This document shows, one piece after another, positions 7,510 to 25,911 of a stretch of 64,000 nt of DNA (position 1 is the stretch's first letter; every line of letters starts with the position of its first letter). Position numbers and translations under genes: made by a program. The notes below the pieces were generated by a model that saw nothing but the letters and a program-made list of their open reading frames with translations, had not been told where the DNA came from and did no database searches. Location: IMG/VR virus record IMGVR_UViG_3300032236_002285, positions 248,001 through 312,000 of that record; one strand, written 5' to 3'.

Positions 7510-7617
7510 ATGACAACAATGAATTTAAATATGAATATGAATCTAACGGTGGTGCTTAATACATTATGTATTAGACGCTCTGAGGGCTTCGTCATATCTA
7601 AACGATTTGTTGACTAA
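7510..7617 (+). CDS. attenuator leader peptide 1, MTTMNLNMNMNLTVVLNTLCIRRSEGFVISKRFVD
   Basis: ATG 5 nt after the late motif; TAA at 7615-7617; overlaps the antiterminator strand 7579-7591. Confidence 0.7.
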   Translation: MTTMNLNMNMNLTVVLNTLCIRRSEGFVISKRFVD

Positions 7618-7649
7618 ATGTATAACAAATTTTATAAAGGATAAAATCG

Positions 7650-7682
7650 AAACCCTCAGACAAAAAATCTGAGGGTTTTTTT
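7650..7682 (+). terminator. attenuator terminator upstream of tRNA array 1
   Basis: AAACCCTCAGA-caaaaaa-TCTGAGGGTTT plus T-run; 5' arm can instead pair with 7579-7591 (12 of 13 bp). Confidence 0.85.
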
Positions 7683-7780: not shown

Positions 7781-7865
7781 TGGTAGGTACCCGAGCGGTC
7801 TTCAGGGACTAGTCTGATATACTAGGTGAGAAATCACGACGTGGGTTCAAATCCCACCCTACCAA
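7781..7865 (+). tRNA. tRNA-Ile(GAT) with long variable arm
   Basis: TGGTAGG/CCTACCA; CTAGT-CTGATAT-ACTAG; variable hairpin GTGA-GAAA-TCAC. Confidence 0.8.
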
Positions 7866-7871
7866 CAACAT

Positions 7872-8083: not shown

Positions 8084-8914
8084 ATGTTAGACTTTGAAAA
8101 TATTCAAAAAGACTTTGAAAGTGGTCTTTTTTATCAAAAAGATATACTAATTAAGTATAGTATATCAATTAAAAAATTAAGAACTTTTGTAAAAAAAGGT
8201 TTATTGAATAAAGAAAATTGGAAATTAAAAAAATATGAAGTAAAAAGAGAAACAAAAAAGTTAATATCAGAAGGTAGAAAAAAATGGTTGAAAGAAAATA
8301 CATCTAAACATCCTTGGAGAAATGGAAATAAATCTAAGCCTTGTGAGGAGTTTAAGAAATTCTTAAAAAGTAGGAATATTTTCTTTTTGGAAGAGGTTAT
8401 GATTTCAAAAGAAAGATTCTATTCGGTTGATATTTTAATACCTGAGTTCACTTCGGTTGTAGAAATTAATGGTAATCAACATTATAAATCTAATGGAGAA
8501 CTTAAAGATTACTATAGTGAAAGAAATAGTTTTATAAAAAATAAAGGATGGTCGATATATGAAGTACACTACTCAATTGTTTATAATTTAGAAATGTGTG
8601 ATTCTATTTTAGAAAATATTAAAAATAATAATAAAATCGATATACCATTTTATATAAAAAATAAGAAAGAAAAAAAATATAAGAATAGGGAAGAGTACTG
8701 GAATAAAAGAAAAATTAATAAATTGAATAGTTATAGTGAAAGATTAAATGAATTAAAAAACAGTAGTATAGATTTTAAAAAGATTGGATGGGTTAAACTA
8801 GCATCTGAGATATTAAAAGTTAAAAATGTAAATAAACTATTAAAAGAAATCGATCCAGAATTTTATAAAAATTGTTATAAAAGAAAACAAAATGCCGAGG
8901 TGGTGGAATGGTAG
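8084..8914 (+). CDS. DUF559/Vsr-like PD-(D/E)XK homing endonuclease inserted in tRNA array
   Basis: FYSVDILIP..VVEINGNQHY..RNSFI..GWSIYEVHY; Lys-rich; last 21 nt overlap tRNA-Leu. Confidence 0.7.
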   Translation: MLDFENIQKDFESGLFYQKDILIKYSISIKKLRTFVKKGLLNKENWKLKKYEVKRETKKLISEGRKKWLKENTSKHPWRNGNKSKPCEEFKKFLKSRNIFFLEEVMISKERFYSVDILIPEFTSVVEINGNQHYKSNGELKDYYSERNSFIKNKGWSIYEVHYSIVYNLEMCDSILENIKNNNKIDIPFYIKNKKEKKYKNREEYWNKRKINKLNSYSERLNELKNSSIDFKKIGWVKLASEILKVKNVNKLLKEIDPEFYKNCYKRKQNAEVVEW

Positions 8915-9010: not shown

Positions 9011-9096
9011 TGATAGGTTGCCGTAGTGGCCGAACGGTCCGGACTGTTAATCCGGTGACGAATAGTCCATCGTGGGTTCGAATCCCACCCTGTCAG
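9011..9096 (+). tRNA. tRNA-Asn(GTT) with long variable region
   Basis: TGATAGG/CCTGTCA, G73; CCGGA-CTGTTAA-TCCGG. Confidence 0.8.
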
Positions 9097-9103
9097 CAAA
9101 TAT

Positions 9104-9625: not shown

Positions 9626-9709
9626 GCCGATGTGGCTCAGTGGCGACAGCACTGGTTTTGTAAACCAGAGACGAATAGTCCAACGGGGGTTCGAGTCCCT
9701 CCATCGGCT
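9626..9709 (+). tRNA. tRNA-Thr(TGT) with long variable region
   Basis: GCCGATG/CATCGGC; CTGGT-TTTGTAA-ACCAG. Confidence 0.85.
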
Positions 9710-9724
9710 CAAAATAAATCACCT

Positions 9725-9916: not shown

Positions 9917-9988
9917 TTCGATATGGCCTATTGGTAGGGTGCAGGGGGACATGTTCCTGAGGACTTGGTTCGATTCCAGGTATCGATA
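9917..9988 (+). tRNA. tRNA-like element, anticodon undetermined (8-nt loop GGACATGT)
   Basis: Acceptor, D- and T-arms present (CTTGG-TTCGATT-CCAGG); non-canonical anticodon loop. Confidence 0.5.
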
Positions 9989-9995
9989 CAAACAT

Positions 9996-10082
9996 CGCGG
10001 GGTAGAGTAGAGGTCAAACTCACTGGGCTCATAACCCAGGGTTGCGCAAGTGACACGTCAGGTTCGAATCCTGCCCCCGCTA
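9996..10082 (+). tRNA. initiator-type tRNA-Met(CAT) with long variable arm
   Basis: Unpaired C1:U72; three consecutive G-C pairs in CTGGG-CTCATAA-CCCAG; extra GTTGC-GCAA-GTGAC hairpin. Confidence 0.8.
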
Positions 10083-10255: not shown

Positions 10256-10340
10256 GCCGGTGTGATCCGATGTGGTAATGGAGTTCGGCTCATATCCGAA
10301 TTGGTTTATCCTATTGCTGGTTCGACTCCAGCCACCGGTA
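10256..10340 (+). tRNA. tRNA-CAT (elongator Met or lysidine Ile2), long variable region
   Basis: GCCGGTG/CACCGGT; TTCGG-CTCATAT-CCGAA. Confidence 0.75.
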
Positions 10341-10345
10341 CAAAT

Positions 10346-10448: not shown

Positions 10449-10730
10449 ATGGAAAAGATTATCGACATCGTTAGAGATAACGTTGCAAGATTCGACTGGG
10501 CTTCTGAAGGAGTCCTCTACTACAAAGTAGAAACTGAAAAATATATCTATCACTTCCCAGTAGATATGAATAACAAAGAAGATGTGGGAACAGCTAATTT
10601 TGAATCAGAACATAAGGCTATAAATCTTATGAGATATTTAAGAAAAGCATCAGAAAACTTAGAAAAAATTAAAAACGATTCAGGTACGCCTGATTGGAAA
10701 AAGACATTAAGAGTTACACAAAAAGTATGA
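10449..10730 (+). CDS. hypothetical phage protein
   Basis: 93-aa ORF; its TGA overlaps the LeuRS ATG (ATGA). Confidence 0.6.
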   Translation: MEKIIDIVRDNVARFDWASEGVLYYKVETEKYIYHFPVDMNNKEDVGTANFESEHKAINLMRYLRKASENLEKIKNDSGTPDWKKTLRVTQKV

Positions 10731-11992
10731 AAGATGAAAAGTATATATGCGTTATGTTTCCTTACCCAAGTGGTTCGGGATTGCATGTAGGTCACTTTTA
10801 TAATTATGCTATAATTGATTCTTATTGTAGATACTTTAAATACAAAGGTCAACAAGTTTTTCAACCTTTTGGTTATGATGCCTTTGGTTTGCCGGCTGAA
10901 AACTATGCTAGAAAAGTAGGTCGTGATGCTAAAGATGTTACCTATGAAAACATCAGTCAATTTAGAAAACAGATGGAAAAGATGGATACCAACTATCAAG
11001 AAATGTTGGTAACATCTGATCCTTCTTATCAAAAATGGACACAATGGTTGTTTTTGAAATTGAAAGAACATGGCTTGGCTTATAAAAAAGATGGTGAAGT
11101 AAATTGGTGTCCTTCTTGTGAAACCGTATTGGCTCGTGAACAAGTTAAATCTGATTGTTGTGAAAGATGTTCAACTAAGGTAGAAATGAAAACAATGAAT
11201 CAGTGGTACTTTAAGATTACTGATTATAAAGAACGTTTGATTAAAAACTTGGATTGGATAGATTATCCAAAATCAACTATTAACGCGCAAAGAATGTGGT
11301 TGGAAAACTTGCACGATTGGTGTGTTTCTCGTCAAAGAAAATGGGGCTGTCCAATTCCAATAGAAGGTGAAACCGATACAATGGATACATTTGTAGATTC
11401 TTCATTTTACTATGTTAGATATTGTGATGCTACTAATGATAATGAATTGTGTGCTAAAGATAAATATAAACAAGTAGATGTTTATGTTGGTGGTAATGAA
11501 CACGCTTGTATGCACTTGATTTATGCTCGTTTTATTAATATGTTTTTGTATGATATTGGTGTTGTTTCAGAGGAAGAACCATTTAAGAAAGTTATACATC
11601 AAGGTATAATTTTGAACGAAGGTGAAAAAATGTCTAAAACAAAAGGTAATGTTATTAATCCAGATGATTATGACTCTGATGAATTGAGATTTTATATGAT
11701 GTTTATTGGTCATTATTTTGATGGTGGTTCTTGGTCTGACCAAAATATAGCTGGTATTAAAAGATTTATTAGTCGTTTTAAGGAGTGGATGTCAAGAGAA
11801 GGTTCTGATACTTTTGATATTGAATCATTTAAGAAAAAAATATTTAACTACACTGAGAGTTTTAAGTTTAATAAAGTTGTTAGTGAGTTTATGACAATAG
11901 TTAATCAAAATAGAACTAAAAACATAACACCTGAGATAAAAAAAGAATTGATTGAATTGATTAAGGTGTATATGCCTGGAATTAAAATTTAA
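10727..11992 (+). CDS. leuS: minimal leucyl-tRNA synthetase lacking the CP1 editing domain
   Basis: MFPYPSGSGLHVGH (HIGH), FGYDAFGLPAENYA, DWCVSRQRKWG, ETDTMDTFVDSSFYY, EKMSKTKGN; about 421 aa; start moved to ATG 10727. Confidence 0.9.
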   Translation: MKDEKYICVMFPYPSGSGLHVGHFYNYAIIDSYCRYFKYKGQQVFQPFGYDAFGLPAENYARKVGRDAKDVTYENISQFRKQMEKMDTNYQEMLVTSDPSYQKWTQWLFLKLKEHGLAYKKDGEVNWCPSCETVLAREQVKSDCCERCSTKVEMKTMNQWYFKITDYKERLIKNLDWIDYPKSTINAQRMWLENLHDWCVSRQRKWGCPIPIEGETDTMDTFVDSSFYYVRYCDATNDNELCAKDKYKQVDVYVGGNEHACMHLIYARFINMFLYDIGVVSEEEPFKKVIHQGIILNEGEKMSKTKGNVINPDDYDSDELRFYMMFIGHYFDGGSWSDQNIAGIKRFISRFKEWMSREGSDTFDIESFKKKIFNYTESFKFNKVVSEFMTIVNQNRTKNITPEIKKELIELIKVYMPGIKI

Positions 11993-21287: not shown

Positions 21288-21692
21288 ATGAAAGAAGTAG
21301 AATTGCTAAAATTAGGGTACATAGTACATGCCGTTAGACAAGATAAAAAAAATCTTATAATGGTTGCTTTCAATGGTGGTCCATTATTTGACTATTATAT
21401 TTCAATTTTAACTAGTCAATGTGATGATTACGAATATCTAAAAACTGATAAGTCTATTATTGGTGGTATAAATTTAAACTTGATGAATCGAAAAGATTTA
21501 GAAACATTCAAGTGTGTACCAGATGATAATCCAATTGTAGGTAAAAACTTTACAGTAAATAATCATTATTGGAGTACATCAGAAGTTAAAAAGATAATAA
21601 ATAATAATATTATAATAACTAAAAACTCAGTCTATGCCATTCATGATATTTCTGAGTTAAGAGATAAAAAAATAAATGATTTAGGTATATGA
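21288..21692 (+). CDS. hypothetical protein with C-terminal RDKKINDLGI motif
   Basis: Operon position; shared C-terminal motif. Confidence 0.6.
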   Translation: MKEVELLKLGYIVHAVRQDKKNLIMVAFNGGPLFDYYISILTSQCDDYEYLKTDKSIIGGINLNLMNRKDLETFKCVPDDNPIVGKNFTVNNHYWSTSEVKKIINNNIIITKNSVYAIHDISELRDKKINDLGI

Positions 21693-22243
21693 TTAATTAT
21701 ATTCCAACAAATAGAAACAATCCAAGATTAGCAAATGTAGGTAGTGCTTGGGGTAATATTCCTACAATAATAAAAGACATAATTGATAGGTTTAATTTAA
21801 AACAAGATTTAGCTCTTGAATTTGGCGTTGAGTATGGTTATTCAACTTCAGCGTTAGCTAACTATTTTAATAATGTAATTGGTGTTGATACTTTTGAAGG
21901 AGATCCACACTCTGGATTTAAAATAAATCATCTTGAAACAACTACTGAAAATCTTAAAGATTTTAGTAATATTCAATTAGTTAAATCAGATTACAGAGAT
22001 TATATTAAAGATAATAATAATATGTATGATATGATTCATATTGATATTATACACACTTACAATGAAACATTTGAATGCGGTGAGTGGGCAATAAATCACT
22101 CAAAGTGTGTTGTTTTTCATGATACACTTTCATTTTATGAAATAATGAGAGTTTGTGAAGATCTATCAGCAAAACACAACCTTGATTTTTACAATTATGA
22201 GGAATCTTATGGTTTAGGTATTTTAATTAATAATAATCTATAA
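21689..22243 (+). CDS. class I SAM-dependent methyltransferase (Methyltransf_24-like)
   Basis: ALEFGVEYGYST, IGVDTF, YDMIHIDIIHTY, VVFHD. Confidence 0.8.
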   Translation: MINYIPTNRNNPRLANVGSAWGNIPTIIKDIIDRFNLKQDLALEFGVEYGYSTSALANYFNNVIGVDTFEGDPHSGFKINHLETTTENLKDFSNIQLVKSDYRDYIKDNNNMYDMIHIDIIHTYNETFECGEWAINHSKCVVFHDTLSFYEIMRVCEDLSAKHNLDFYNYEESYGLGILINNNL

Positions 22244-22310
22244 ACTAAATAAAGAATAAAAGTATAACAAATGGCAATAATGCCATAATTAAAAATAAAC
22301 AAGAATAAAA

Positions 22311-22502
22311 ATGAAAACAGGAACAGTAAAGTTCTACAATGAGGCTAAAGGATTTGGTTTCATCACAGACGAAAACGGAACTGACGTGTTTGTACACGCT
22401 ACAGGACTAAAAGATGAAATCAGAGAAAATGATTCAGTTAGCTTTGAAGTAACAGAAGGTAAAAAAGGATTAAATGCAATTAATGTAACAGTTAATGCTT
22501 AA
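22311..22502 (+). CDS. cspA: cold-shock protein
   Basis: GTVKFYNEAKGFGFI..DVFVH (RNP1/RNP2). Confidence 0.95.
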   Translation: MKTGTVKFYNEAKGFGFITDENGTDVFVHATGLKDEIRENDSVSFEVTEGKKGLNAINVTVNA

Positions 22503-22521
22503 TATATTTTTAGTACTAATT

Positions 22522-22551
22522 AAAACCCTTAGATTTATCTGAGGGTTTTTT
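22522..22551 (+). terminator. intrinsic terminator
   Basis: AAAACCCTTAGA-ttta-TCTGAGGGTTTTTT. Confidence 0.8.
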
Positions 22552-22576
22552 GTTTATAAAAATTAATATATAATGT

Positions 22577-22951
22577 ATGAAATATTTACAAACAATAAAC
22601 GAATATCAAAGAACTGTAGGTTTTAGATATTCTGAACCAAAAGAAAAATATAAAGTATCTTTATTATGTAAAGGTCAAGATATCAATGAAGATAAGATAA
22701 ATGAAGGTTTATCAAAAGTTAGTGAATTGACTTATGACTCAAAGTCTATTGAAGTAAATTTACTTGATGAAGGTATGATTGCTGAACTACCAGAAATTGG
22801 ATCTGTAGAGATTAGCGCAATTGTTAGTTTTAATGTAACTCTTTACAATGAGAAAGAAGTAAATGGTGTTGTTAGTGAATTAGGTCAAAAGTTATCAAAA
22901 TTTGATATTGAAATATTAGATTTTAAATCAAAAGAAAATTTGGAAGATTAA
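22577..22951 (+). CDS. hypothetical protein, MKYLQTINEY tag family
   Basis: Late motif at 22564-22572; N-terminal tag. Confidence 0.6.
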   Translation: MKYLQTINEYQRTVGFRYSEPKEKYKVSLLCKGQDINEDKINEGLSKVSELTYDSKSIEVNLLDEGMIAELPEIGSVEISAIVSFNVTLYNEKEVNGVVSELGQKLSKFDIEILDFKSKENLED

Positions 22952-23086
22952 AATATTATTTCTATCTTTGTATTCACAAAACAAAAAAGAATTAAAAAAA
23001 AATTAAAAAAATATTTGACAAATTAAAACTTTGTTGTATATTTGTATAAAATAAGAACAAAAGGAACAAAAACTTTTTAATATATA
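22939..23086 (+). promoter_or_regulatory. promoter block of tRNA operon 2: two sigma70-type promoters and a late motif
   Basis: TTTG22939/TATCTTTG22963; TTTG23014/TATATTTG23037; TAATATATA 23078-23086; homologous to 7441-7504. Confidence 0.75.
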
Positions 23087-23091
23087 CAGAA

Positions 23092-23190
23092 ATGAAAAAC
23101 TTAAACTTAAATATCGTTAACCCTCAACCGCAAGTTGTAATCGATCAGGATCCTGGTTCGAAAGGGGCTAACTATGTGGTTTTAAGTTAA
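23092..23190 (+). CDS. attenuator leader peptide 2, MKNLNLNIVNPQPQVVIDQDPGSKGANYVVLS
   Basis: ATG 5 nt after the late motif; TAA at 23188-23190; Pro/Gln/Asp-rich core. Confidence 0.6.
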   Translation: MKNLNLNIVNPQPQVVIDQDPGSKGANYVVLS

Positions 23191-23213
23191 AGATATTATA
23201 ACTATGAAACATT

Positions 23214-23246
23214 ACCCAGTTAGTCGAAAGATTAACTGGGTTTTTT
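23214..23246 (+). terminator. attenuator terminator upstream of the Asp/Pro tRNA block
   Basis: ACCCAGTTAGTC-gaaa-GATTAACTGGGT plus T-run; 23166-23173 GGCTAACT can pair with 23218-23225. Confidence 0.85.
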
Positions 23247-23257
23247 GTTTTAGATAC

Positions 23258-23329
23258 AGTCCGTGGGTATGTTGGTATGAATAACCTCCTGTCACGGGGA
23301 AGAAGCCGGTTCGATTCCGGTACGGACTG
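23258..23329 (+). tRNA. tRNA-Asp(GTC)
   Basis: AGTCCGT/ACGGACT, G73; loop CTGTCAC. Confidence 0.85.
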
Positions 23330-23334
23330 CAAAA

Positions 23335-23408
23335 CGAGAAGTGACTAAGGTTTTAAGCACGCGCCGTCTGGAGCGGTGAGTTAGCAGGTTCGATTCCTGT
23401 CTTCTCGA
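23335..23408 (+). tRNA. tRNA-Pro(TGG)-like with atypical anticodon loop
   Basis: C1:G72 and A73 (CGAGAAG/CTTCTCG-A); CGCCG-TCTGGAG-CGGTG has C33 and A37. Confidence 0.6.
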
Positions 23409-23471
23409 CAACAAGTAGCTTTTGAGGCGAAAAATACTCTTTAGAGAATAGAGTAAAACAATTCTCAAAAT

Positions 23472-23544
23472 GGTCTCGTGGTTGAATGGTTACAATACCA
23501 CCCTGTCACGGTGCGAGATGCCGGTTCGATTCCGGTCGAGACCG
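23472..23544 (+). tRNA. tRNA-Asp(GTC)
   Basis: GGTCTCG/CGAGACC, G73; loop CTGTCAC. Confidence 0.9.
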
Positions 23545-23549
23545 CAAAA

Positions 23550-23620
23550 GGACATATAGCTTAAAAGGAAAGAGTACCTCCAGTGGGAGGGGAGTCTTGG
23601 TTCAAGTCCAGGTATGTCCG
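23550..23620 (+). tRNA. tRNA-like element, anticodon undetermined (shortened loop)
   Basis: GGACATA/TATGTCC, G73; D- and T-arms intact; CCTCC-AGTG-GGAGG. Confidence 0.5.
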
Positions 23621-23626
23621 CAAAAA

Positions 23627-23698
23627 GGTCTATTAGGGTAGTGGTTATCCTTCCCGACTGTCTATCGGGAGACACCGGTTCGAATCCGGTATAGACCG
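23627..23698 (+). tRNA. tRNA-Asp(GTC)
   Basis: GGTCTAT/ATAGACC; CCCGA-CTGTCTA-TCGGG. Confidence 0.88.
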
Positions 23699-23745
23699 CA
23701 AATGGGCTTTTCAAGACAAAAAGTTTGTAGATTACTTAATGAAAC

Positions 23746-23820
23746 GGTCTAGTGGTGAAGTGGCTATCATATCTGCCTGTCACGCAGAAGTAGAGGGATC
23801 GAAACCCTTCTAGACCGCCA
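23746..23820 (+). tRNA. tRNA-Asp(GTC), CCA encoded
   Basis: GGTCTAG/CTAGACC-GCCA; TCTGC-CTGTCAC-GCAGA. Confidence 0.9.
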
Positions 23821-23826
23821 AAAATT

Positions 23827-23901
23827 CGGGGTGTAGCGTAGTCCGGTTATCGCGCATGCTTTGGGAGCATGAAATCGTAGGTTCGAATCCTGCCACCCCG
23901 A
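23827..23901 (+). tRNA. tRNA-Pro(TGG)
   Basis: CGGGGTG/CACCCCG-A; CATGC-TTTGGGA-GCATG. Confidence 0.92.
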
Positions 23902-23932
23902 CAAAGAAACAAAATATTAATAAATAGAAATT

Positions 23933-23986
23933 ATGAGAACAACAACACAATACCAGCAACAACAACAAATTAATCCAACGGATTGA
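23933..23986 (+). CDS. attenuator leader peptide 3, MRTTTQYQQQQQINPTD
   Basis: Six Gln codons (CAA x5, CAG x1) in 17; TGA lies inside segment 2 of a 1:2/2:3/3:4 hairpin set. Confidence 0.85.
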   Translation: MRTTTQYQQQQQINPTD

Positions 23987-24014
23987 TAACGGTATCGTAT
24001 TGTCTAAACTTTAC

Positions 24015-24048
24015 AAACCCTATTCAATCTGATTGAGTAGGGTTTTTT
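24015..24048 (+). terminator. attenuator terminator upstream of tRNA-Gln x3 and glnS
   Basis: AAACCCTATTCAA-tctga-TTGAGTAGGGTTT plus T-run, ending 2 nt before tRNA-Gln. Confidence 0.88.
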
Positions 24049-24050
24049 AT

Positions 24051-24121
24051 TGTCTGATGGTGTAGTGGTAGCACAAGGGTCTTTGATCCCCTTAGTTCAG
24101 GTCCGATTCCTGATCAGACAA
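24051..24121 (+). tRNA. tRNA-Gln(TTG)
   Basis: TGTCTGA/TCAGACA; loop CTTTGAT; T-loop TCCGATT. Confidence 0.8.
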
Positions 24122-24128
24122 CAAATAT

Positions 24129-24210
24129 TGAGGAATAGAATAATGGCAGTTCACCCGCCTTTGAAGCGGAGAGAGAAATCTCAGTGTAGGTTCGAGTCCT
24201 ACTTCCTCAA
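24129..24210 (+). tRNA. tRNA-Gln(TTG) with long variable arm
   Basis: TGAGGAA/TTCCTCA; CCGC-CTTTGAA-GCGG; GAGA-GAAA-TCTC arm. Confidence 0.82.
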
Positions 24211-24216
24211 CAAAAT

Positions 24217-24288
24217 TGCTTTATAGTATATGGGTTAACATATCTGTCTTTGAAACAGATGAACTTGGTTCGAGTCCAAGTGGAGCAA
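24217..24288 (+). tRNA. tRNA-Gln(TTG)
   Basis: TGCTTTA/TGGAGCA; TCTGT-CTTTGAA-ACAGA. Confidence 0.85.
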
Positions 24289-24306
24289 CAAAAAATAATA
24301 ACTACT

Positions 24307-25911
24307 ATGAATTTCATTGAAGAAAAAATAATTGAAAAAGGTAATCTTGATAAACTAACATTGAGATTTCCACCAGAACCAAATGGCTATTTACATATTG
24401 GTCACGCTAAATCCATTATCTTAAATTTTGGTTTAGCTGAAAAATATAATAGACCTTGTAACTTGAGATTTGATGATACTAACCCAACTACCGAAGATAC
24501 TCACTTTGTTGAGTCAATTATAAAAGATATAGAATGGTTAGGTTACAAACCCGCCAATATTTTCTATACATCTGATTATTTTGATTTTCTTTATGAATGT
24601 GCTATTACTTTAATTAAAAAAGGATTAGCTTATGTTGATGATTCAACATCAGAAGAAATTGCTAACTTAAAAGGAACACCAACTTCACCTGGTAAAGATT
24701 CACCTTATAAGTCAAGAAGTGTTGATGAAAATTTAGACCTATTTAATAGAATGAGATTAGGTGAATTTGTAGAAGGTTCTAAAATTCTTAGAGCTAATAT
24801 TGATATGACTTCTCCTAATATGATTTTAAGAGATCCAGTTCTTTATAGAATAATATCTAAGTCACACCACAGAACTGGTGATACTTGGAAGATTTATCCA
24901 ATGTATGACTTTGCTCATCCACTTTCAGATTATAAAGAAGGTATTACCGATTCTTTATGTACTTTAGAATTTGAAGTTCACAGACCTTTATATATGTGGG
25001 TTTTAGAAAATTGTGATTTAGAAAATCCGCTTCCAGAAGAAACTGAGTTTGCTCGTTTGAACATTGACTATACGGTTATGTCAAAGAGAAAATTAAAAAG
25101 ATTAGTTGAAGAAGGATTTGTAGATGGTTGGGATGATCCAAGAATGCCAACTATTTCTGGTTTAAGAAGAAGAGGTTTTACTCCAAATGCTATTAAAGAT
25201 TTTTGTGATAGAATTTCTGTTACAAGAAAAGATGGTATTGTTTCTTATTTACTTTTAGAAGAATGTTTAAGAACTGATTTGAACATAGTTACCAATAGAT
25301 TAATGGGTGTTATGGATCCAGTTAAGTTAGTTATTACTAATTGGGATAGCGGAACTGAAATGGTTGAAGTTGAAAATAATCCTGGTGATGAAAGTGCTGG
25401 TACAAGAATGATTCCTTTTAGTGGTGAACTATTTATTGAAAGAGAAGATTTCAGAGAAGAAGCTAATAATAAATTTCATAGATTGAAATTAGGTGGTGAA
25501 GTAAGATTAAAAGGCGCTTATGTTATTATGGCTAACGAAGTTATCAAAGATGAATTTGGAGAAATCACTGAGATTAGATGTACTTACGATCCTTTAACAA
25601 GATCAGGTATGTCTATTGAAAGAAAGATTAAAGGAACTATTCACTGGGTATCTGCTGAACACGGAGTTAGAATGAATGTAAATGAATATGATAGATTATT
25701 TAATGATGGATCACCAGATAAAAATGAAGATGATTTTATCAATTATATCAACCCAGATTCACTTATAATTAATGATAAGGCAATCTTTGAACCTCACGTT
25801 TTAAACGTCAAGGAACCAGTTCAAATGATGAGAAAAGGGTATTATATTTTAGATACTGATGGTAAAAGTTTCAATAAAACGGTAAGTTTAAAAGAAGGTT
25901 GGGTAGGTTAA
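24307..25911 (+). CDS. glnS: glutaminyl-tRNA synthetase
   Basis: RFPPEPNGYLHIGHAKS, RFDDTNP, IYPMYDFAH, SLCTLEF, VMSKRKL, GWDDPRMPTISGLRRRG; start moved to ATG 24307 (ORF-track start lies inside a tRNA). Confidence 0.95.
   Translation: MNFIEEKIIEKGNLDKLTLRFPPEPNGYLHIGHAKSIILNFGLAEKYNRPCNLRFDDTNPTTEDTHFVESIIKDIEWLGYKPANIFYTSDYFDFLYECAITLIKKGLAYVDDSTSEEIANLKGTPTSPGKDSPYKSRSVDENLDLFNRMRLGEFVEGSKILRANIDMTSPNMILRDPVLYRIISKSHHRTGDTWKIYPMYDFAHPLSDYKEGITDSLCTLEFEVHRPLYMWVLENCDLENPLPEETEFARLNIDYTVMSKRKLKRLVEEGFVDGWDDPRMPTISGLRRRGFTPNAIKDFCDRISVTRKDGIVSYLLLEECLRTDLNIVTNRLMGVMDPVKLVITNWDSGTEMVEVENNPGDESAGTRMIPFSGELFIEREDFREEANNKFHRLKLGGEVRLKGAYVIMANEVIKDEFGEITEIRCTYDPLTRSGMSIERKIKGTIHWVSAEHGVRMNVNEYDRLFNDGSPDKNEDDFINYINPDSLIINDKAIFEPHVLNVKEPVQMMRKGYYILDTDGKSFNKTVSLKEGWVG

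Follow-up and report, generated by a model that had tools for sequence, protein, structure and literature searches.

The window analysed here, a stretch of 64,000 nt (positions 248,001 to 312,000 of IMG/VR record IMGVR_UViG_3300032236_002285), is 100% identical to a ~476-kb contig of a Bacteroidetes-type megaphage. It is related, at 77% identity over the matching 1.8 kb, to the 642-kb uncultured phage LR756502 and, over a short tRNA stretch, to the 635-kb LR745206. These two genomes came from a freshwater lake and a subsurface sample (PMC9723777) and belong to the 'Mahaphage' group, whose largest members are predicted to infect Bacteroidetes (PMC7162821). Between a gene ending at 22951 and a tRNA array identified with ARAGORN and Rfam, the + strand carries a promoter-like site, a gene-start motif, a small ORF and a hairpin followed by a T-run (Table 1). 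Only 6 nt separate the T-run from the first tRNA-Asp, leaving no room for another promoter, and the array can therefore be transcribed only by reading through this hairpin. Further downstream follow a second leader with its own terminator (leader 3), three tRNA-Gln genes and, 17 nt after the last of these, a glutaminyl-tRNA synthetase gene (GlnRS; Pfam tRNA-synt_1c, E = 2e-97).

Table 1. Features of the leader 2 region and its downstream genes (window coordinates)
Feature	Position	Strand	Description
Host-type promoter	23014..23044	+	TTGACA (23015-20), 16-nt spacer, TATATT (23037-42); also reads as the putative Bacteroidetes form TTTG (23014-17), N19, TAnnTTTG (23037-44)
Gene-start motif	23078..23086	+	TAATATATA, 5 nt before the ATG; possibly a phage promoter giving a near-leaderless mRNA, or an initiation signal
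Leader ORF (leader 2)	23092..23190	+	32 codons plus TAA (23188-23190)
Region 1	23110..23138	+	Predicted to pair with 23167-23197 in the untranslated RNA (anti-antiterminator in this phage)
Sensor codon block	23122..23154	+	Codons 11-21, P Q P Q V V I D Q D P (3 Pro, 3 Gln, 2 Asp codons)
Region 2 (antiterminator strand)	23166..23181	+	Core GGCTAACT (23166-73) pairs over 8 positions (one G.U) with AGTTAGTC (23218-25)
Region 3 (terminator 5' arm)	23214..23225	+	ACCCAGTTAGTC; loop-proximal 8 nt shared with the antiterminator
Loop and region 4 (terminator 3' arm)	23226..23241	+	GAAA-GATTAACTGGGT; stem of 12 pairs including one G.U
T-run	23242..23251	+	TTTTTGTTTT
Controlled tRNA array	23258..23902	+	Asp, Pro-like (23335-23408), Asp, an odd tRNA-like gene, Asp, Asp, Pro(UGG)
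Leader 3 (second, serial gate)	23933..24045	+	Gln codon run (23933-23986) and own terminator (24015-24045); starts 31 nt after tRNA-Pro; no TAnnTTTG promoter
Distal cargo	24051..25911	+	Three tRNA-Gln genes (24051-24289) and GlnRS (24307-25911)

The promoter-like site scored 11/12, the best in 21500-25500. The initial annotation had proposed that this locus is an attenuator with a Pro/Gln/Asp-rich leader peptide, and all of its sequence statements were confirmed. We first asked if the arrangement could be due to chance. Pro, Gln and Asp together make up 13.9% of residues in the long ORFs of the window, and the probability of finding at least 8 of 11 is 1.6e-5, or about 3.5e-4 after allowing for all 11-mers of the peptide. 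The 203-nt leader folds at -50.4 kcal/mol (z = -4.7), and 0 of 200 shuffled sequences were as stable. Moreover, 8 terminator-like sites occur in 21500-25500, compared to 1.7 expected.

To test if the ORF bears the signature of translation, we aligned the same element from 11 phage contigs, whose neighbouring GlnRS is 57-93% identical to that of the window where this gene was captured. ATG-AAA is invariant, all indels inside the ORF are multiples of three, and a stop codon always lies 19-26 nt before the hairpin, which is present in every ortholog. The three Pro columns stay Pro in 8-9 of 11 sequences while using CCT, CCG, CCC and CCA, and the Gln and Asp columns are kept in 9-10, whereas the stretch in between (V V I) is deleted or replaced in several orthologs. 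This pattern is expected if codon identity is under selection, but not for an untranslated RNA. A degenerate codon pattern scanned over viral contigs was too unspecific (120 or more hits), but four of the hits were real after filtering for a downstream tRNA. With the additional orthologs, the number of distinct leader 2 peptides increased to 16.

The start context, in contrast, is not special to the leader. The TATATA core of TAATATATA is invariant in the 11 aligned orthologs, but this motif also occurs 20 times in the window (5.2 expected), and 19 of these copies lie just upstream of an ORF start. At about 19 ordinary genes it is followed by 4-5 nt and ATG, and these genes often begin M-K-x-(L/I)-K. 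All leader classes share the N-terminal sequence M-K-(N/T)-(L/I)-x-N-I, or more loosely M-(K/T)-(N/T)-(L/I)-x-N-I. So the N, L, I and V residues, of which the initial annotation regarded N, L and V as a weakness because no cognate tRNA is present here, are a generic start context and not sensor codons. Shine-Dalgarno sequences are absent, and a TAnnTTTG element, which appears to correspond to the Bacteroidetes promoter consensus, is conserved upstream of every leader that starts an operon. Both features fit the predicted host.

We subsequently investigated the alternative RNA structures. In the predicted minimum-energy fold, the untranslated leader forms a long helix between regions 1 and 2 plus the terminator. 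Here, one correction is necessary: the initial annotation had named TTAACCCT (23117-23124) as the segment sequestering region 2, but the predicted partner is mainly 23126-23138 (the Q-P-Q-V codons), while TTAAC (23117-21) pairs instead with 23186-90. This 1:2 helix is poorly conserved. Its pairs hold in only 3-10 of 11 orthologs, and it is absent from most ortholog nascent-RNA folds. In contrast, the core pairs of the antiterminator (2:3) are kept in 9-11 of 11 orthologs. RNAalifold on 8 orthologs recovered only the terminator with almost no covariation, because the hairpin sequence is nearly invariant within this class.

We then forced a 30-nt ribosome footprint (-15/+14 nt) to be unpaired and folded the nascent RNA up to the terminator loop. 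Region 2 pairs with arm 3 for every A-site from Pro 23122 to Asp 23149, but this pairing is lost from Pro 23152 through to the stop codon. The same step occurs immediately after the last Asp or Pro codon in all 11 orthologs. As a positive control, the identical script was applied to E. coli trpL, for which sequestration of arm 3 was 0.18 without a ribosome, 0.72-0.74 with the A-site on the two Trp codons, and again 0.18 at the stop. The contrast in our masked folds (about 0.8 against 0.34-0.45) is weaker than for trpL. The energies are in the same range: -9.8 (2:3) and -18.0 kcal/mol (3:4), compared to -10.9 and -14.0 for trp with the same software. Therefore, the antiterminator, although its core is only 8 bp, is not too weak to compete. 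But the full-length minimum-energy fold keeps the terminator in every masked state, so that antitermination must be kinetic. Furthermore, a ribosome at the stop codon covers only the 3' edge of region 2, and blocking of 2:3 would then depend on the ribosome wedging the loop between the two strands, which is an inference.

The strongest argument comes from related elements. We scanned the window, 300 kb of LR756502 and LR745206, and the IMG/VR loci, and found the same build before nearly every tRNA array: a small ORF, 17-33 nt, a hairpin with a T-run, and the tRNAs. The peptide cores follow the arrays: KHKHF..K..F precedes Phe/His/Lys, SSRSRSS Arg/Ser, YESYYEE Glu/Tyr, IAVIGNGAGAI Ile/Gly/Ala, NLNMNMNLTVVLN Asn/Leu/Val/Ile/Thr/Met, P/Q/D Asp/Pro, and Q-runs Gln tRNAs. 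In each of the two complete genomes, the true pairing of seven leaders with seven arrays is the only one of 5040 that reaches the observed score. Over 47 distinct peptides, the cognate fraction is 0.305, compared to 0.143 +/- 0.014 for shuffled pairings, and 0 of 20000 shuffles were as high. These sequences are related and hence not independent trials, but eight different classes contribute. Each class has its own region 2 complementary to its own terminator arm, and own-pair duplexes beat cross pairs, with only 47 and 18 of 5040 permutations doing as well. In 14 units of other classes, the footprint model again places the step within about two codons of the end of the cognate block.

Codon choice follows the same trend for Arg. 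The Arg/Ser leaders use only CGN codons (5 of 5, while CGN accounts for 10-12% of Arg codons in the genomes) ahead of tRNA-Arg(ACG) and (TCG), whereas the Asn/Leu/Val/Ile/Thr leaders use AGA (3/3). A matching tRNA-Arg(TCT) follows in LR745206, but in LR756502 only tRNA-Arg(CCT) was detected in that array. The use of Ile ATA versus ATT in leaders also looked matched to tRNA-Ile(UAU) versus (GAU), but since ATA represents 32-51% of Ile codons genome-wide, this is not significant on its own.

The presence of Gln codons in leader 2 makes sense in view of the operon structure. Leaders that start an operon carry TAnnTTTG about 40 nt upstream. The Gln leader never does, and it begins about 30 nt after the preceding tRNA. 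To reach the Gln genes, polymerase must therefore pass two gates in series, and Gln codons in the first leader would let a Gln shortage open it. In agreement with this reading, tRNA-Gln is itself inside the leader 2 array in three orthologs, and the Glu/Tyr leaders contain Ile, Gly and Ala codons and precede an Ile/Gly/Ala leader that also lacks TAnnTTTG.

Taken together, these results suggest that the element is most likely a ribosome-mediated (leader-peptide) transcription attenuator that gates a phage tRNA operon. In the absence of expression data, stalling, coupling, termination efficiency and the physiological signal are inferred. A search of sequencing runs recovered the source DNA sample and only weak RNA matches (share 0.12 or less), which are probably due to conserved tRNA words. 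In this model, transcription starts at the host-type promoter and/or at the TAATATATA motif, and the leader is translated while RNA polymerase moves on. If charged tRNA-Pro, tRNA-Gln or tRNA-Asp is scarce, the ribosome stalls inside 23122-23151, and region 2 is free to pair with the loop-proximal half of arm 3 as soon as it emerges. The terminator hairpin cannot nucleate, and polymerase reads into the Asp/Pro tRNA genes. If the codons are read quickly, the ribosome runs over region 2 to the stop codon, where it sits inside the 2-3 loop, the hairpin forms, and transcription ends at about 23247-23251. Leader 3 would open only on Gln-codon stalling and admit polymerase to the tRNA-Gln genes and GlnRS. 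The product of the gated genes would be the molecule being sensed, so that the circuit represents a direct negative feedback on tRNA supply during infection. Some features fit this model less well. There are only two Asp codons for four or five tRNA-Asp genes, and the Pro codons are mostly CCG/CCT, which host tRNAs might also read. In most orthologs the untranslated nascent RNA already prefers 2:3, and lack of translation may thus mean read-through rather than super-attenuation.

Other explanations appear unlikely, but are not excluded. The attenuator could report general translation capacity, such as ribosome loading or speed or slow Pro-related peptide-bond formation, with codon content being secondary. 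Indeed, sequestration of arm 3 is high for a ribosome anywhere in the first 19 codons, and the untranslated RNA of many orthologs defaults to the antiterminator. But a generic sensor requires neither the match between codon content and downstream tRNAs across eight classes, down to the Arg codon family, nor a cognate block that always ends at the last permissive ribosome position. Even less likely, the ORF could encode a small protein or occur by chance, with the hairpin acting as a constitutive, leaky terminator or in RNA processing or stability, and the tRNAs made by unregulated read-through or from an unrecognised phage promoter. The genome is AT-rich and full of small ORFs, strong terminators are common, and the TAATATATA motif shows that phage-specific start signals exist which our promoter scan does not model. 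However, this is difficult to reconcile with the 6-nt distance to the tRNA and with the recurrence of the same build, with matched composition, before nearly every array. Moreover, the peptide is conserved chiefly in its P/Q/D codons and in the nucleotides of region 2 while the rest drifts, and the terminator is unusually conserved where it overlaps the region 2 complement.

An RNA-only sensor in the style of a T-box, in which uncharged tRNAs bind codon-like triplets directly, would also be consistent with a terminator/antiterminator switch preceding translation-apparatus genes, but is very doubtful. Rfam gave only tRNAs at gathering score over the window and nothing credible at E up to 10 over 23040-23260. 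Neither T-box nor the curated Trp, His, Leu, Thr and Phe leaders were among the 19 sub-threshold hits, the best being PyrR with 23.8 bits against a gathering score of 54. In addition, the element is only about 160 nt long, shows a translation signature, and matches several different tRNAs by many in-frame codons and not by one specifier. Equally doubtful is a classical starvation attenuator that senses amino-acid supply and happens to sit before tRNA and aaRS genes. Stalling reports charged tRNA, so that amino-acid starvation would also open the gate, and GlnRS lies in the operon, an arrangement probably comparable to the E. coli pheST attenuator. But extra tRNA does not relieve amino-acid starvation, so such a circuit would have no corrective output, and the Arg codon family follows the anticodons of the downstream tRNA genes rather than just the amino acid. 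This possibility overlaps our preferred explanation and differs only in which input matters in vivo.

As in the leader-peptide attenuators of amino-acid operons (E. coli trp, his, leu, thr, ilv, pheA), a short translated ORF with cognate codons precedes an intrinsic terminator whose 5' arm can pair instead with an upstream segment, and ribosome position, here by inference, decides which pairing forms. Biased synonymous codon choice is likewise discussed for the leu and thr leaders (PMC1183508). Here, however, the cargo consists of tRNA genes plus an aaRS and not of biosynthetic enzymes, the element lies in a phage, codons for three amino acids are interspersed rather than forming a homopolymeric run, and the 1:2 helix is poorly conserved. 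The GlnRS part resembles the pheST attenuator with its pheM leader, where an aminoacyl-tRNA synthetase operon seems to be controlled by stalling at cognate codons, but apparently without tRNA genes and with a single gate. T-box riboswitches of Firmicutes also control translation-related genes depending on tRNA status, but bind uncharged tRNA directly and are not translated. In Salmonella mgtCBR (PMC3641672), two short ORF-dependent attenuators lie in one leader or operon. There, both appear to precede the coding region and to sense different signals, whereas here the second gate lies inside the operon between two tRNA sets, and the first leader carries the codons of both. We found no description of leader-peptide control of tRNA genes, although absence from the literature searched does not prove that none exists, and the megaphage papers examined mention tRNAs and synthetases but no such control (PMC9723777; PMC7162821).

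It is plausible, and in our view more likely than not, that a whole clade of Bacteroidetes-type megaphages runs a demand-driven tRNA supply network. Nearly every array would be gated by a leader peptide translated with the very tRNA species it controls, with Arg codon choice suggesting isoacceptor resolution, and gates would be wired in series so that a proximal leader integrates the needs of all downstream sets. This would be the first case of tRNA genes under ribosome-mediated attenuation, and of a sensor whose input and output are the same molecule. Phage-encoded tRNAs are usually treated as constitutive helpers for codon usage or as spares against host tRNA cleavage. A sensor switching on each set only when ribosomes wait for it would change that picture. 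It would show how a virus with dozens of tRNAs and several synthetases keeps translation balanced in a cell whose own tRNA pool may be changing or under attack, and would explain why the arrays are sorted by amino acid. The elements are modular and apparently codon-specific, and they could serve as codon- or tRNA-specific reporters. A BLAST search of the tRNA array against phage records for more distant relatives returned generic tRNA hits only.

Two observations concern the leader 2 sequence itself. A tRNA-like look of GGTTCGAAAGG inside the leader is peculiar to this phage and absent from orthologs. In the three Pro columns, 12 of 26 codons are CCG, 11 are CCT and only 1 is CCA, whereas the phages use CCA for 50-65% and CCG for 3-6% of their Pro codons. 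The arrays carry tRNA-Pro(UGG), and we can only suggest that avoiding its best codon may raise sensitivity, as has been argued for the rare Leu codons of the leu leader (PMC1183508).

Besides leader 2, the window contains two other attenuators of the same build. Leader 1 is rich in T/M/N/L/V/I and precedes 20 tRNAs of those identities, and its region 2 forms a -17 kcal/mol duplex with arm 3. Leader 3 carries a run of Gln codons and is followed by three tRNA-Gln genes and GlnRS. In leader 2, the direct repeat TAACTATG provides a second, weak partner for terminator arm 3 just upstream of the hairpin, but it is present only in this phage and its closest relative. In the alignment of leader 2 with its orthologs, the Pro codons are CCG (12/26) or CCT (11/26) and almost never CCA (1/26). 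In these genomes, CCA makes up 50-65% of Pro codons, and the arrays encode tRNA-Pro(UGG). The positions of these and the following features are listed in the table.

Features of the window and of individual loci (handles beginning with L)
Position	Strand	Feature
Window 645, 1130, 4564, 5847, 7496, 14853, 22564, 23078	+	TAATATATA motif (among others)
Window 5590, 18811, 30628, 33744, 56902, 58720, 61314	-	TAATATATA motif (among others)
Window 7510-7679 and 23933-24045		Attenuators of leader 1 and leader 3
Window 7781-7866, 9011-9097, 9626-9710, 9997-10081, 10256-10341, 24129-24211		Long tRNAs for Ile, Asn, Thr, Met and Gln
Window 8084-8914		276-aa ORF inside tRNA array 1
Window 9917-9989 and 23550-23621; L002 4420-4493		tRNA-like genes with abnormal anticodon loops
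Window 10694-11992 and 24307-25911		MetRS-like gene and GlnRS gene
Window 23122-23154 and orthologs		Leader-2 codons compared for Pro codon choice
Window 23169-23176 and 23199-23206		Direct repeat TAACTATG
Window 23335-23408		tRNA-Pro(UGG)-like gene
Window 23409-23471		Conserved spacer with small hairpin
L038 4870; L042 39 and 126; L039 9836-11470		tRNAs outside any leader-terminator unit
L022 4950-5103		Leader preceding tRNA-Trp

The motif TAATATATA, followed by 4-5 nt and ATG, marks the start of about 19 genes in the window, with 20 sites found against 5.2 expected. It often follows a terminator T-run directly, and the genes often open with M-K-x-(L/I)-K. It looks like a phage-specific promoter giving near-leaderless mRNAs, or an initiation signal. 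The same motif also accompanies an ORF without any Pfam match that sits inside tRNA array 1 and may be a mobile insertion. Furthermore, class-I aminoacyl-tRNA synthetase genes follow the arrays: a MetRS-like gene follows the Asn/Leu/Val/Ile/Thr/Met array, and GlnRS lies 17 nt after the last tRNA-Gln. These genes may share the attenuator control.

The tRNAs for Ile, Asn, Thr, Met and Gln are 83-87 nt long, and the tRNA-Gln at 24129-24211 has a long variable arm, a feature that in bacteria is normally confined to Leu, Ser and Tyr tRNAs. Some tRNA-like genes, which are conserved inside the arrays, have abnormal anticodon loops, for which ARAGORN reports 4-nt 'acat', 2-nt 'gt', and 'gtag' in the LR745206 ortholog. 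A further tRNA-Pro(UGG)-like gene is missed by ARAGORN and only borderline in Rfam (29.6 bits), but its orthologs in LR756502 and LR745206 are called Pro(tgg). Its anticodon loop appears to have C rather than U before the anticodon.

A few tRNAs lie outside any leader-terminator unit. Most of them are Met(CAT) genes just upstream of the Glu/Tyr leader, plus a Pro(AGG); Met-tRNA is needed to start the leader itself. In a more distant relative (GlnRS 60% identical), a leader with the core F-N-C-F-W-F-P-Y-Y-P-F precedes tRNA-Trp, at a locus that ends before the rest of the array can be seen. Finally, a conserved 60-nt spacer with a small hairpin separates the second and third tRNA of the Asp/Pro array behind leader 2 and is also present in LR745206.
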